This document shows positions 14,811-21,206 of a DNA stretch of 64,000 nt, in pieces. The translations under genes and the position numbers were made by a program. Each line of letters starts with the position of its first letter. Position 1 is the first letter of the stretch. This DNA comes from Convolutriloba macropyga (taxonomy: Eukaryota), in assembly GCF_964194025.1 (NCBI RefSeq), contig NC_134468.1, positions 40,300,001 through 40,364,000 on the forward strand, given 5' to 3'. The notes under the pieces are model-generated. The model saw only the letters and a program-made list of their open reading frames with translations. It was not told the origin of the DNA and did no database searches.

Positions 14811-17392
14811 TCAACTTCTGTAATTGCTCTACTTTTGTAAAAAAAATATGCAGCTCCATATTATTGGTTAGGAAATGCGACGAGTTTCAGTAATGGTGCA
14901 AGTCTGCGCGCATGCTAACTAACAGTAATATGGGGCAACATCAGAAGTTTGAATGAGTGCGAATAGGGTCGAGCTATTGGCGGAATAGAAAACATCAGCT
15001 TAGCGCATAGAAAGATGCGCTAACCTGATTAGAATCATAATTTGCACATTACCAAAAAAAAAATTTTCTTGCAAGATTCCAACACAATATTGGAAAACGA
15101 GACATGATTTTCTTGCACGAAACGTTTTTTTTTGTAGAAATTTTCGTGCACAAAAATCTTGTACGATAAACGGAAATGACAAAGAAAAACACATTTTGAA
15201 AACTTTTTCTCAAAAATGTGCAAACTATAGTTATAAAATAATATGGTTAGCGCTTGTTCACAATACTATATCGATTGTGTTCTATTGACTTTTTAAATGT
15301 GAGAAATAGTTAAAATAAGAGAATGGACAAATTTTGGGAGCTGAATTGATAAAAATTATACGAGAAGCATATATTAGTTAAGTTATAGCCTTCTATCCCC
15401 TGAATCAGGCAACAATCAACCCCGTGCCCTGTTTGTCATGCAAGAGCAATTAATTGGGCTTTAGTCGGCTGTTTCAAAAGAAAGTACAATTGTTATCTTT
15501 ATTTGTGCTCACTTCTGAAATATTGTAAATTTACTCAAAAAGTTGTTTAGAGTCGTCATCCCAAGAAAGGCGCGTCATTGATATGAGGAGTTACTGTGCA
15601 TACAAACAAACGAATGATGGAACAAAGAAACATTTGAAATCTCAAGTGTCAACTCTGAAATCAAATCAGGACCAAGCTAATATTCGCATTTTGCTCAAGA
15701 ACTAAGATTGTTGCAACTTGAAAAAAAATCGATACGAGATGAACGAACGACAAATAAACGGACCACATAGTTAACAAACTCGATACAACCATCACCACTC
15801 ATAGACTTATGCACAATAACGGGACACAAGTGATACCGATTCCTTCTTAAAAAGGAGGATTTTAATATAATTGGAGATAAAGTGCTAGTTGGAAAAATTT
15901 TATGATATCAGAACGGAGAAAAAACTATTTTATGGTTTAGGCTGTTTATCGAAAGTAGGAACGTGTGTTATTATCTTCCGTTTCCATGGCGCTTTTCAAA
16001 CTTTGTTGATGCTTAGCTTTTGGAAATGTTTAGTTCAGTTTGCTTTAATATTTTCCCCAAAATGTTGAAGCAGCAACCAAAATGTGATTAAAAATAATGA
16101 TTTCAGAAAAAAATTTTGAAAAAAGTGTTGAAATAATTTATATAAGGTGAATACAAAATATCGAAAACGGATGATAACAATAAAATTTGAAATGGCGCCC
16201 GGATTGTGTGAAGATGAGTAATATTTTGTTATTGATTGATAGAGTATTACATGCGTAAATACATACATACATACGTCATTGGTGCTTGTCCTATCCTTAG
16301 TTTACCTTTACTAGTGTAAAAAGATTATGGTAATTTATAATAAATAATTCGTCTTTGTAATACCCCCTTCTTTTTCTTTCACTTCATTACAAGTAGTTAA
16401 ACCTTCCAACTTTCTCGACAAGTTTTGTTCAAAGGAATACAAATACGTATTTTTTCTTATTGTAGTTAACTTAACTTTACCAAACTTTTGTAGTTTTGAT
16501 TAACTAAACTGTTTATGATATTTGTGGTATTAATACTACTACTACATTAACTGGTGTTCTGCAAATAGTGGCAGCAACTTTTCATTCTTCATGTGTTATT
16601 TTGTGTCAAATTGGTGATTTTTTTGTATGTCATTTTCATGTCGTAAAGTATACAAAATTATCCTACTATTCATCACATACATTTCAAGTTGCTGAGCAAC
16701 GAACATACTATTATGTCATCTTGGACATCACAGGTTACGCAATATCACAGTGGCATGGCGTAATAATGACAGATGATTGCGTAACTTGTTTCGTGCTAAT
16801 TTATCATTTGACAGTTCGTTTAATTACATATTGATATTGCCCTTATTTTTGAAATTACGGTGAAAGATTTTTGTAGCTATTTTTCTTACCATCTTCGATA
16901 ATATTATGATCTTTGAGAACTTTGAATTTATCATTTGAATTAAACTCTTGAGTCCAAATAAGATGCATTATAATATATTTATAATTGTTCCAACCTTTCA
17001 GGAAATACCAAACCGACGTTTTTGGTTGTGTCAAATTTGGCCGGTCGATATCGCTTGCGAAGAGATAAAAAATGGTAGCAAGAGAAAGCACTCGAAAAAC
17101 AAGCGATTGTTGAAGAGTCATTTTCATTTTTTTTGTTTTTACAGGAGGAATTGAGGTTTAAATTTCTCGTTCGAGGTTCTCACGTTTCAAATACTAACTA
17201 CAATAATATATATATTAATTAGATTTACCACATTTCAAATAGATTGAAAATTTGTTTCTTAAAATGTCTTAATTAACCAGAAAAAAAATCAGTGGAAAGC
17301 AGCTTATGCTCAAGAGCAGACTTACATGTAGTAGTAGTAGTCCAGACTTTATTTATACACCCTTTCTTTACACAAAGGTGGTGGCACATAGC

Positions 17393-17980
17393 ATCTGTAG
17401 AGTATCTTCAGCCCTAACCGGGCATTTCAAAAGAATACGTCCAGAACACGCTCTTGATTTGTCGATCTTCAACTCTAACCGAGTACTTTGCTGCAAATCC
17501 ATTAATTCATTCAAATAAAAAAAATATTGCAATCTGTAGAATATCTTCAGCCCTAACCGGGCATTTTTTCAAAAGAATACGCCCAGAACACGCTCTTGAT
17601 TTGTCGATCTTCAACTGTAACATAGTACTTTGCTGCAAATCCATTAATTGATTCAGATAAAAAAATATTGAAATCTGTAGAATATCTTCAGCCCTAACCG
17701 GGCATTTTTTCAAAATAATACGTCCAGAACACGTTCTTGATTTGTCGATCTTCAACTGTAACAGAGTACTTTGCTGCAAATCCATTAATTCATTCAGATG
17801 AAAAGAATTGCAATATGTAGAAAATCTTCAGCCCTAACCGGGCATTTTTTTCCAAAAAAATACGTCCAGAATACGCTCTTGATTTGTGAATCTTCAACTC
17901 TAACCGAGTACTTTGCTGCAAATCCATTAATTCATTCACATAAAAAATATTGGAATTAAAATAGCTTCAGCACTAACAGT
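17393..17980. repeat. Tandem repeat, about 140-bp unit, 4 full copies plus a degenerate partial
   Basis: tctgtaga.tatcttcagccctaaccgggcatttt...gtactttgctgcaaatccattaatt recurs at about 17394, 17533, 17674, 17814. Confidence 0.95.
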
Positions 17981-18512
17981 GCACATTAACGTCTCCTTGA
18001 TTAAAAAAAGTTCTGTGTGTTTGATTGCGCGTCGAAAGTCTGAAGCCAGTACTCTGATATCGCTCGGATTTCGGTGAATTCCATCATTACATAGATGCTT
18101 GTCGAATTTGAACTTCTTCAAACTGACAAAAGGAACATTCAACTCTCTTGCAACATCTCTATGACAATTGTTTAGCCTCCTGACAGTTTCGCCTTTTCGA
18201 TCAATTAGCTCCATAATTGCCACTCTAATAGAATGAAACTTCAATTTTTGCACCAAATAGTACATTTCATCTGATGTTTCTACTGGACCCATTAACCGTA
18301 GGTTGTTTTTATCATACAGGTTATTAGTACCGGCCATGATTACAAATTGTCGTACCTTCCTGTTTAAGAGCTCTTTAAAAATACTATCACAGCACATAGT
18401 CGAGATACTTCTACCTGTACAAGAAATGGTCACGCAGTTTTGTACAAAGGCACCAGAGATTAAAGACGAACCGAGTATGCAAGAAGTCTTTTCAAACCGG
18501 TTTTTGAAGTAC
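17936..18512 (-). pseudogene. SGNH/GDSL-type hydrolase (esterase) ORF inside the LINE, 3' of RT
   Basis: One open frame holds CILGSSLISG (block I-like), SCTG (block II Gly), MAGTNN (block III) and NDGIH (block V); no clear ATG, stop just upstream near 18515. Confidence 0.75.
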
Positions 18513-21206
18513 TGTTAAAGGGCGATCACTGAGATAGGTTTCTCTTGATGTTATTGATTCGAGATTTTCGAAAATTGGTGATATCCATATGAAACTCTGA
18601 AAGCAGGTTGAAGATACCTTGTGCAAAGGAAACTCTTCAGTTCTCTCCTGAACATGTAGTGATTGCTAATTTTCCTCAAATTATTTGGGAAGTTGTTCCA
18701 TAATTTGGGACCGCGAATACTAAATGCTCTATCACCATATGAGTTTTTAGAATTGACAGGAACAGCTTTCCACAAATTAACTGATCGTTGGGAATCTTTT
18801 TGAAGCTGCAGTATAAAAAGACTTCGAATGTACTCTGGAGCAAGACAGTTATGAAGAGTGATCTGTTCTGTAAGCAGACTGCTTGACGTCAAGAAGTTAA
18901 TTTTATTTTCTTCAAGAGATCGTTTGAGTTCATCGGCGGCTAGTCGTTCTAGAAGTTTCGAAAAAAATATGGTGTTTGCAAGAGGTCGATAATTTTTGGT
19001 TACCTCTGGGTCAAGCGAAACTTTCATAAACTTTGGTTTTATGATTGCTACTTTGAAAACATCAGGGTAGGCGCCTTGTTCGAAGCTGCTGTTAGCAAGG
19101 TTTATTTAATGATTAGAGCAGGGATGAAAAGTTTCTTTTGCAACCGAGGTGGGAATTGGATCCAGATCACAGTCGCTGTTTGATAGATTTTTAAGTGCAA
19201 TATCTAACTTGTGGATCTCTATCAGCTTAAATTCAATCAGCTATCATTGGACGCTGAATTATCAGTCATATTTGTTTTCATGGGATTGGGTATTGGGTTT
19301 CTAAGGTCAACAATTTTGTTTGTGAAGTACTTTCTAAGCTCCTCTGCTGTTTTTGTTTGTGAACCCCAACTCTTAGGAAGTTTTTATTCATCGGGAACGC
19401 CCAAGAGGTGATTGAAATTTTAGAATTTTGAACGAAGATTCAGGTTTTGTCAAAAAACGCTAAATTTTTTTCTAAAAACTTTCTTATAATTGGAAATAGA
19501 TGCTGAAATTCAGTTTTATTTTCAATAGAGGGATTTTTCTTGTAAAGCTTTTCTCTCTTCCGGCGAAATCGTTTAAAAAATTCCAGCTCTTCGTCAATCA
19601 TTTGCTTAGATTGCGCGTTTCATATGGGACAGCGTCCTCTATAGCCCCAGAAAATGTGCCGAGTAACAAATTTCCTAAGTTGTACGGTCAGTGAATGTGT
19701 TGATTCAAGCAGAGAGGTAATTCTGCCTCATTGTTAAAAGCACTAGAGTCTGTTTTTCTCCCAATTTTGCTTGTGGCTGGTTCACAATTTTTGGGTTTGG
19801 ATAGGGAGGATATTTTGAACTTGATAAGTTTGTGATCAGAAAAGCTCAACTCATTGGCAGAAATCAGAGAGACACGTTCCTTATCGTTAGTAAGAATTAG
19901 GTCAAGCACATTTCCACTCTGATGGGTCGCTTCATTAATAGCAAACCTCTTTAAGCCGTTTTCACTCAATTCTCGCTGAGACAACAACAGTTGTATAAAT
20001 AACCATTGAAACTACACTTTGACGTCCAATTAACACTACAAAATCTGCTTATCATAAAAGCAGTGGCGATAAAAGAATGTTATAAACTCGTAATCTAATG
20101 ACGGCAACAGTGGCATAAAGTTATGCAACTGTTGTAACCGCACTACTGTTGATAAAAAAAACTTCCACCAGGTTGTTATCGCCTTCTCGAAATTATTAAG
20201 CCATTCTACTTCGCCTCGTAGTAAAATCTCGATGGCAATAAAAACCGTTGTTGTAATTATCCATTAATGAAACGATTTGACAATCAGTCAACCTATATAG
20301 TAACCCCATTTTTTTAGAACTGCATTTTTTTACTTACTGTTTCAAACGAATTTTTTTTGATGTTCTAAACTTCTGTTATTAGAATCACTGCGAATGACTG
20401 ATAATTGAGGCGAATTTAAGAATAAGAGACTATATTGTTTTTTAATCTAATAATATCTCTCTAATTATAAGTTGGCCTATTAATTACAATTAATAATTGC
20501 TCTTGGGCGAGTCGGCCGAATTCCTCTTCCTCAAAATTCGTGGAACAACCCTGACTCATTAAAAATTTTGAATGACGCTTTAGCGGCACAAAAAATTAGA
20601 AGACAATTCAACTCCTTAATCTTGGACAAATTTTTGTAATTACTCCATTGTGCAATGGAGTTTTTGAACAATTTATCCAATTTCTTGCCCTTGTCATCTG
20701 TTGAACACAGGAACTTATAGTTTTGGACAAAAAGGCGTTTATCGTTTGAACAGCGATAGGAACATGAAAAGATTAAATAGAGATAGCTGAGCACGCTCTT
20801 GTAGTAAGAGAAAAACATAGCAGAAGAGGACCAAAAAATAGTCCAAAAAATAGACAAATCAAATGCAGACTATCAGCTTCAGAAAAACAAAATAACATTT
20901 CAGAGTTAGGATAGCATAAAAAATACAGAAAAGAAATTAAATAATAAATTATAAAAAACACTTTGCATTAACTGATTTTTTAAAAAAAACTGTTAACTAA
21001 GTCATTAAAATTTTGTCAAAATTTAGATGAACCGGTACGTATCAGAAATTCGAAAGTAACAACCCTGTTGATAAAATGAAATGATAGAATTAATAAAAGA
21101 GTAATAGTTAGCAAACTCGGACGCTTCGAAGTGCACAAAACGCTTTGAAAATAAGTGGCAAAAAATTCAACAAAGTACGTAACAAAAATTCCTATTCACA
21201 CGACAT

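Follow-up and report, generated by a model that had tools for sequence, protein, structure and literature searches.

Introduction

An esterase-type first open reading frame (ORF1) was reportedly recognised by Kapitonov and Jurka in 2003 in long interspersed nuclear elements (LINEs) of the CR1 group. In retroelements of another class, the Ngaro/DIRS-type tyrosine-recombinase elements, which integrate by another mechanism, an SGNH-type hydrolase ORF lies downstream of the reverse transcriptase (RT) gene. Here we describe a LINE in which the esterase gene is the last of three. It was found in a stretch of 64,000 nucleotides from the acoel Convolutriloba macropyga (NCBI RefSeq assembly GCF_964194025.1, contig NC_134468.1, positions 40,300,001 to 40,364,000 of the forward strand), referred to below as the window. 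The element lies on the minus strand at 17328-19936. Coordinates without a prefix are window positions; relatives are labelled as L0xx loci and grouped in families A to E.

Esterases of LINEs have been described only as part of ORF1 (PMC5408684, PMC13343379, PMC4120745, 10.1101/788562), and the role proposed for them is an association of the retrotransposition particle with lipids or membranes (Schneider et al. 2013, PMC3905857). The survey in PMC4120745, which covered domains 5′ of the endonuclease only, found esterase ORF1s in vertebrate subgroups only. Its type IV ORF1 (CR1, L2 and RTEX elements, with ZfL2-1 as an example) shares with the present element an SGNH/GDSL esterase in an APE-type LINE of the CR1 group. 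There the esterase is a domain of ORF1, 5′ of ORF2, whereas here it is free-standing and 3′ of ORF2. The protein encoded by this third frame (ORF3p) does not itself contain the coiled coil, which has remained in ORF1p. The host here is an invertebrate. The ORF1 of our element resembles instead the type III ORF1 of CR1/L2 lineages, with a PHD finger, a coiled coil and an RRM-like C-terminal domain. PMC4120745 reports no 3′ ORF for type III elements, within its survey of coding domains 5′ of the endonuclease.

An additional GDSL esterase ORF3 that lies 3′ of the polymerase gene and keeps its catalytic residues is present in the bdelloid Vesta long terminal repeat (LTR) elements and Athena/Terminon Penelope-like elements (Rodriguez et al. 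2017, PMC5408684). These are LTR and Penelope-like elements and not LINEs, and the likeness established between them and the ORF3 described here is one of position. The same paper treats the LINE esterases as a separate group, located in ORF1, and proposes modular sharing between retroelement classes.

An earlier note on this DNA, made from the sequence alone, held that SGNH esterases of LINEs sit in ORF1 upstream of ORF2 and that a downstream esterase is an arrangement not known from LINEs. The papers searched agree with the first statement. As to the second, the searchable full-text literature (Repbase and Dfam were outside the search) holds no description of a LINE with a separate esterase ORF downstream of ORF2. 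We conclude that the locus is very probably a defunct copy of an acoel LINE of the CR1 group (CR1/L2-like) that has three genes, the esterase being a separate ORF3 in last place. A known part, the LINE esterase, stands here in a new layout, as the last gene rather than within the first.

Families with an esterase ORF downstream of ORF2

The 1.18-Gb genome of the species was searched with positions 17328-18750. At least 12 further copies, at 81-86% identity, carry the end of ORF2, the SGNH frame and the start of the array, and a second set at approximately 70% identity has the same parts in identical order. We term the subfamily of the window copy family B and the diverged set family A. Three near-complete family A copies (L043, L050 and L039) encode an ORF1 of approximately 280-300 residues with a PHD finger, an ORF2 of 937-946 residues with APE and RVT_1 domains, and an SGNH ORF of approximately 211-215 residues. 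It counts against the three-gene reading that ORF1 to ORF3 were not all intact together in any of the three family A loci read.

A search of the genome with the ORF3 protein returned more than 150 matches, which is a lower bound, and many copies of families A and C are free of stops. Family C was found in this way. It has at least 10 stop-free copies, and in another assembly of the same species (L051) an RT ORF is followed by ORF3. Families D and E come from marine metagenome assemblies, including Tara Oceans. Six independent contigs of 4.9-5.1 kb represent family E. They derive from different samples, each has a different upstream flank, and each carries an open ORF1 (274 residues), ORF2 (923 residues) and ORF3 (211 residues), with an ATGA overlap. 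The architecture is common to these five families and is seen both in many genomic copies and in contigs from marine metagenomes.

The window copy is badly rearranged. One could therefore suppose that an esterase fragment, for example from the 5′ ORF of another LINE, came to lie by chance beside a truncated LINE tail at this place only. The earlier note had named a junction unique to this locus as the mark of such an accident and had proposed a genome-wide check of the order RT, SGNH, array, tail. That order recurs in many copies with different flanks, in five diverged families and in other samples. At least 12 family B copies show ORF2 end, ORF3, hairpin array and tail; the order is the same in genomic copies of families A and C, and in families D and E from independent metagenome assemblies with different flanks. 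In all five families the tail 3′ of ORF3 is a conserved stem-loop belonging to the element itself; the esterase stands between ORF2 and this tail. Because the junction is found in many copies and families, the link between RT and esterase is a family trait and not a local chimera. We give the chance reading a negligible probability.

In L043, L050 and L053, Pfam assigns the PHD finger to ORF1 and both APE and RVT_1 to ORF2; the GDSL match of ORF3 is weak. ORF2 consists of an N-terminal APE endonuclease and a central RT (Exo_endo_phos and RVT_1 in L043 and L053). ORF1 of the full-length copies, which the earlier note had wished to see examined, carries a PHD finger, a coiled coil and an RRM-like domain; Pfam detected no esterase domain in the ORF1 of the relatives. 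The AlphaFold model of ORF1 is of low confidence (predicted local distance difference test, pLDDT, 49). The RRM-like domain is predicted from a beta-alpha-beta-beta-alpha segment at pLDDT ~75 and from sequence motifs.

ORF1 and ORF2 are in one frame with just one TGA between them, the next base being C (TGACTC or TGACTA; L050:5606-5608, L048:5328-5330, L053:1188-1190). Family A, the ORF3-less copies of family B and family E have no in-frame ATG ahead of the start of APE. This suggests that ORF2 may be made by stop-codon readthrough or by AUG-independent reinitiation. From 5′ to 3′, an intact element would comprise a DNA copy of the spliced leader, a 5′ untranslated region (UTR) with GGNUA hairpins, ORF1 (PHD, coiled coil, RRM-like), a UGA, ORF2 in frame with ORF1, ORF3, a 3′UTR with a GGNUA hairpin array, a terminal stem-loop and a microsatellite tail.

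Some arrangements of the copies were also observed. Pairs of family B copies stand head to tail, 4.4-4.9 kb apart (G000:C8:25713121-25718599 and C12:30004401-30010264), which suggests tandem duplication or tandem insertion of whole elements. At G000:C1:60892335-60900802 there are eight family C-like ORF3 matches (74-86% identity) with a spacing of ~1135 bp, most of them covering the C-terminal two-thirds only. Judged from the match positions alone, this looks like a tandem array made from the 3′ part of the element. The 3′ flank of one family E insertion (L053:4985-5123) encodes the intron-free N-terminus of a Rab11-like GTPase (DYLFK..GDSGVGKSNLL..).

The junction between ORF2 and ORF3

The transition from ORF2 to ORF3 differs among the families. 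Family A has the ORF2 stop TAG, then a single T, then the start codon of ORF3. The same spacing, with TGA as the stop, is seen in most of 10 family B copies (TGA, T, ATG), and in family E stop and start codon overlap as ATGA. The ORF3 ATG lies 20 nt past the ORF2 stop in family C and ~16 nt past it in subfamily D2. In subfamily D1 the distance is 138 nt, and the spacer contains two hairpins. By these sequences, all better-preserved copies encode the esterase as an ORF3 of its own.

The earlier note had left two possibilities, a 3′ ORF3 and a C-terminal fusion of RT and esterase. In the second, the esterase would be a C-terminal domain of ORF2, and the intervening stops would be due to decay. 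The window copy seems to invite this reading, since its ORF2 C-terminus and its SGNH part are in one frame with two stops between them. However, the window ORF3 lacks 2 nt and 32 nt that are present in its sisters (at ~18535-18500, just past the ATG; 10 sister copies compared), and the shared frame is an accident of decay. Every better-preserved copy has a stop codon and a change of frame (+1 in A and B, ATGA in E, 16-138 nt in C and D). Because the frame offset varies among the families, a conserved frameshift or readthrough fusion is excluded. An ATG stands at the homologous position in all families and is followed by a conserved basic N-terminus. The short frame MDITNFRK, already noticed at the decayed junction, is the homologue of this start: the window ATG at 18588-18586 (MDITNFRK...) corresponds to the ORF3 start of the better-preserved copies, and the 10 sister copies explain the junction. 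Of the two possibilities only the separate ORF3, with a stop and its own ATG, has held, and we consider the fusion highly improbable.

The ORF3 protein

ORF3p has ~210 residues, including a basic N-terminal extension of 45 residues. In an alignment of 11 ORF3p sequences, S52 (GSSL), G70, N101 (GTNN) and D182 (DGxH) are invariant, and N100 is present in at least 90% of the rows. The histidine of DGxH (H185) is found in all rows except two decayed family B copies. All intact families conserve the four SGNH blocks (Ser, Gly, Asn, Asp-x-x-His), and the window frame has them as well.

The AlphaFold model of ORF3p has a pLDDT of 82 and a predicted template modelling score (pTM) of 0.82. Its best Foldseek match is 3p94_A (E 4.6e-8, probability 1.00), followed by TesA and acetyl-xylan esterases. 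The top 50 matches are essentially all SGNH/GDSL hydrolases, with a few rows of designed scaffolds; the ZfL2-1 esterase is not among these 50. VIA-align gave Z 16.5 and a root-mean-square deviation of 3.3 over 173-177 aligned residues, and PAF-AH Ib and sialate O-acetylesterases gave Z 14-15. 3p94_A is also the best structural match of the L2 esterase ORF1 in PMC4120745.

Sequence comparison is less favourable to this assignment. The Pfam Lipase_GDSL_2 score of ORF3 is 21-24 bits and does not reach the gathering cut-off of 32.9, and searches of the PDB with the ORF3p sequence and its profile gave no esterase. The Pfam match that the earlier note wished to see was obtained in the window frame (E 4e-4), also below the gathering score. 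More distant relatives of the ORF3p family score 33-38 bits with Lipase_GDSL_2. With Pfam below its cut-off and no PDB sequence match, the call rests on fold and motifs: ORF3p is a putative esterase with a predicted SGNH fold of the flavodoxin-like alpha/beta type.

The selection analysis that the earlier note proposed was carried out on two subfamilies of family D. Between families, the nonsynonymous divergence (dN) of ORF3 is 0.40-0.47 and the synonymous divergence (dS) is saturated, so the ratio was taken from the closer pair. For D1 against D2, dN is 0.090, dS is 0.721 and dN/dS is 0.125. ORF3 has the substitution pattern of a gene under purifying selection. The identity between families is 52-65% for ORF3 and 42-58% for ORF2, and A and B are the closest pair in both. 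Since ORF3 identity parallels ORF2 identity, the data fit co-inheritance of the two since the common ancestor of families A to E.

Copies without ORF3

In the genome search with 17328-18750, at least five loci join positions 1-144 of the query straight to 1047-1423 and skip ORF3. L047 and L048 were read base for base: ...TATCAAC runs directly into GTTAATGTGCAC..., the first hairpin of the 3′UTR. The deletion of ~650 bp removes the last six codons of ORF2 and nearly all of ORF3, and the junction is found in three loci (L047, L048 and L049). Over the ORF2 end these copies match family B at 90-92% identity; they start with the leader and have different flanks. They form a derived subfamily that, from its junction and flanks, arose by one clean deletion and evidently kept retrotransposing.

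As this subfamily kept spreading, ORF3 is dispensable in cis. ORF3 could then be a passenger, that is, a host esterase gene acquired by 3′ transduction or template switching that renders no service to the element and is expressed, if at all, by accident. The insertion of the deletion subfamily at at least five loci agrees with this, as does a passage in PMC13343379, citing Kajikawa et al. 2012, according to which zebrafish L2 transposition is apparently independent of esterase activity. Yet ORF3 has been kept together with ORF2 across lineages that retain only 42-58% identity in ORF2. The low dN/dS, the catalytic residues conserved in all intact families and the conserved start context also speak against a passenger. 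The nearest relatives found outside ORF3 are retroelement esterases and not host enzymes. The ORF3-less copies, for their part, could be complemented in trans by ORF3-bearing elements of the same genome. We regard the passenger reading as improbable. In the three-gene reading, ORF3p as a free polypeptide would supply the function that the esterase domain of ORF1p has in CR1, L2 and RTEX LINEs. It would act in trans or be dispensable, given that the ORF3-less copies still moved.

Leader, UTR hairpins and tail

Full-length copies of families A and B, of the ORF3-less subfamily and of family E begin with GCCTAATTGTTGTGATAAACTTATTAAATAG (L043:4473-4503, L050:4351-4381, L047:4286-4316, L053:84-114). 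This sequence is the published spliced leader of Symsagittifera roscoffensis (PMC9911081). We infer from the sequences that the host of family E is a related marine acoel. Leader DNA also heads unrelated neighbouring elements (L031:6766 and 8563, L040:9384), and in L044 three extra partial leader copies are stacked ahead of the leader. The leader's 3′ half (ACTTATTAAATAGC) has its complement in a segment ~10 nt downstream (GCTATTTGATAAGT), after which another TTTCAG follows (L043:4484-4545; L047 and L053 likewise). With this complementarity, the 5′ end of the element can fold back on the leader.

A small hairpin, NNNN-GG(U/A/C)U(G)A-NNNN with NGAAG after it, recurs in both UTRs. Among 43 instances of loop plus GAA collected from six elements with no pairing requirement, 32 have four of four stem pairs and 10 have three of four, where chance would give ~2%. 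Compensatory changes are seen at three of the four stem positions, in an alignment that was preselected for pairing. Each of the five families has kept the A-rich box and the terminal stem-loop, with compensatory changes in the stem-loop. The 3′ end has no poly(A); after the stem-loop comes a microsatellite. Families A, B and C share (CTA)n, family D has (GTAA)n and family E has (GAT)n. In D1 (L059:1285-1340) the 138-nt spacer holds two GGNUA hairpins, and D2 (L073:150-203) lacks this spacer. The absence of these hairpins from D2 indicates that hairpin units move or duplicate within the element.

These features recall the stringent tails of UnaL2 and ZfL2 (PMC1636434, PMC4176376), which likewise have no poly(A) and place a stem-loop beside a short 3′-terminal repeat. 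The GGNUA pentaloops (GGUUA, GGAUA, GGCUA) are like the GGAUA loop recognised by the UnaL2 protein (PMC1636434). They differ from UnaL2 in that they occur in arrays of 2 to 7 and also in the 5′UTR, and the stem-loop before the microsatellite has a different loop, of 9 nt.

Possible expression of ORF3

Two routes to an ORF3 product can be considered. ORF3 may be translated by termination and reinitiation at the stop-start overlap (ATGA, TGAtATG, TAGtATG); we give this route a chance a little short of even. Alternatively, ORF3 may be translated from a processed RNA. A pyrimidine-rich ...TTTTCAGA motif that resembles a splice acceptor lies 4-13 nt 5′ of the ORF3 ATG in 10 of 11 lineages, also where this region is non-coding. 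Because it overlaps coding sequence of ORF2 in families A, B and E, coding constraint may account for part of its conservation. Approximately 30% of the genes are trans-spliced in the acoel host (PMC9911081), which makes processing at the acceptor-like UUUUCAG motif before the AUG plausible; we rate it somewhat lower than reinitiation.

Several observations tell against these routes. ORF2 is 920-950 codons long, and reinitiation after such a length is normally inefficient. Reinitiation is also unlikely in D1, with its 138-nt spacer, and in family C, with 20 nt and an intervening AUG. A search of the genome with exact patterns for families A, B and C found no junction of leader and ORF3, in families that are small; the control pattern, for leader-headed full-length copies, found five. 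The lack of genomic leader-ORF3 junctions means that trans-splicing at the ORF3 site gains no support from the genome. The leader-ORF3 pattern of family E had no match in the Joint Genome Institute (JGI) metagenome collection, where the control showed family E to be absent.

A second LINE clade with a downstream esterase

An unrelated LINE of the same species (L069:1611-6654, a locus of another assembly) has a single ORF of 1434-1587 residues followed, ~85 nt downstream, by an intact SGNH ORF of 217 residues. In the long ORF, two 2A-like NPGP sites and a duplicated PHD-like finger are combined with APE, RT and C-terminal C2H2 fingers. The TTTTCAGAAA-ATG context recurs at the start of the SGNH ORF, and the same hairpin of ~20 nt stands on both sides of this ORF. 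Seven close copies carry the esterase ORF ~90 nt past the end of the long ORF, and eight more diverged pairs have the same order by coordinates. Loci of this clade include G000:C5:33204510-33205851, C1635:7982-9323 and C1083:50274-51615. A relative was found in another metagenome (L065). The esterase of this second clade is ~27% identical to the family C ORF3, and the polymerase ORFs barely align, which favours some modularity of the esterase gene.

The three-gene reading could be extended accordingly. The esterase ORF, the upstream UUUUCAG motif and the downstream hairpin would form a cassette that retroelements exchange, that this LINE lineage acquired on its 3′ side and that has its own trans-spliced mRNA. 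A second, unrelated LINE clade with a downstream SGNH ORF, the same TTTTCAGAAA-ATG context and a repeated hairpin is what such a cassette would leave, and 10 of 11 lineages have the motif before the ATG, also in non-coding settings, with a hairpin 3′ of ORF3 in all of those lineages. Within families A to E, however, the divergence of ORF3 tracks that of ORF2, as in vertical descent. The genome holds no leader-ORF3 junctions, and in A, B and E the conservation of the motif may be partly coding. We consider the cassette rather unlikely. In its furthest form, the UUUUCAG-A...AUG leader, the esterase ORF and the hairpin would be a module swapped among unrelated acoel retroelements; the LINEs would be operon-like, the spliced-leader machinery would cut out the ORF3 mRNA, and the GGNUA arrays of both UTRs would be binding sites of the module or of the RT. 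This form is speculative and equally doubtful.

Anatomy of the window copy

The window element (17328-19936, minus strand) is a 5′-truncated, decayed LINE copy by comparison with full-length relatives. The APE end, RT, L2-type C-terminus, SGNH frame, array and tail listed in the earlier note were all recovered where it had placed them on the minus strand. Its expectation that 5′-truncated copies would retain the esterase is met by the window copy itself.

Homology to the full-length relatives L047 and L031 begins at 19936/19924 (blastn). A remnant of the APE endonuclease of ORF2 gives a weak Pfam match at 19688-19987 (Exo_endo_phos_2, E 0.002). The ORF2 segment from the C-terminal half of APE to the N-terminal RT region (18855-19936) is 86% identical to L047 5937-7060 and contains several stops and frameshifts. 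At 18853-18855 an internal deletion of ~940 bp has removed the RT core: position 18855 corresponds to L047 7060 and position 18853 to L047 8000. Of these domains the copy thus retains no more than the end of APE and the sequences that flank the RT core. The ORF2 C-terminus with GDRAFS..PKLWN follows at 18551-18853 (91% identity to L047 8000-8246). Its stop is lost, with TCA at 18592-18590 where most sisters have TGA, and the frame continues to a TAA at 18553-18551.

Just 5′ of the ORF3 ATG, at 18593-18606, the junction sequences show the pyrimidine-rich, splice-acceptor-like motif ...CTTTCAGA. ORF3 itself (17936-18588) is broken and has 65-68% amino-acid identity to open family A ORF3s. Its SGNH frame (18514-17939) carries the ILGSS, G, GTNN and DGIH blocks and ends with a stop at 17938-17936. 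The 3′UTR tandem array at 17393-17977 (142 bp x 4.2, Tandem Repeats Finder) contains six hairpins NNNN-GGTTA-NNNN followed by TGAAGAT, with stems that start at 17909, 17843, 17703, 17562, 17484 and 17423. The terminal stem-loop (CACCTTT ... AAAGGGTG) lies at 17358-17380 in the alignment of the five families and folds at -7 to -12 kcal/mol. The A-rich box (tataaataaag, 17357-17347) and (CTA)n (17340-17328) occupy 17328-17357 and mark the 3′ end of the element, all on the minus strand.

Relationship to classical esterase LINEs

A profile search with ORF3p against 1.84 billion cluster representatives returned 101 matches. The distant matches P0162 and P0154 (E ~1e-5) are proteins of 411-415 residues with the esterase at the C-terminus. 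P0162 combines a PHD finger at its N-terminus with a GDSL domain at its C-terminus and lies upstream of a 913-residue APE-RT ORF2 (L066), the classical position. ORF3p is 26% identical to the esterase half of P0162 (pairwise E 1e-8), a distant relationship, and the PHD finger of P0162 aligns with those in ORF1 of the ORF3-bearing elements. As P0162 holds PHD finger and esterase in one ORF1p, these two domains are here divided between ORF1 and ORF3. The ORF2 of our elements is 23-31% identical to that of the classical element with a PHD-plus-esterase ORF1.

The label L2-like in the earlier note was not established. The tail and the GGNUA hairpins resemble UnaL2, whereas the PHD and RRM-like ORF1 is of a type reported only from the CR1 lineage (PMC4120745). 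This conflict of traits is a further point against a closer placement: with the ORF1 type pointing to CR1 and the GGNUA loops to L2, the assignment is left between the two, and the element is filed under the CR1 group (CR1/L2).

Conclusion

With its gene in last place and apart from that of the RNA-binding protein, the esterase is able to act here as a free protein. Surveys restricted to the region upstream of the endonuclease can miss such accessory genes. One genome holds copies with ORF3 and copies that have lost it, a natural series in which a need for the esterase in cis, a need in trans and no need at all could be told apart. Stop-start overlaps, a motif like a splice acceptor in a host that trans-splices, and a UGA in frame between ORF1 and ORF2 together make a compact system in which to study the production of three proteins from one LINE RNA.

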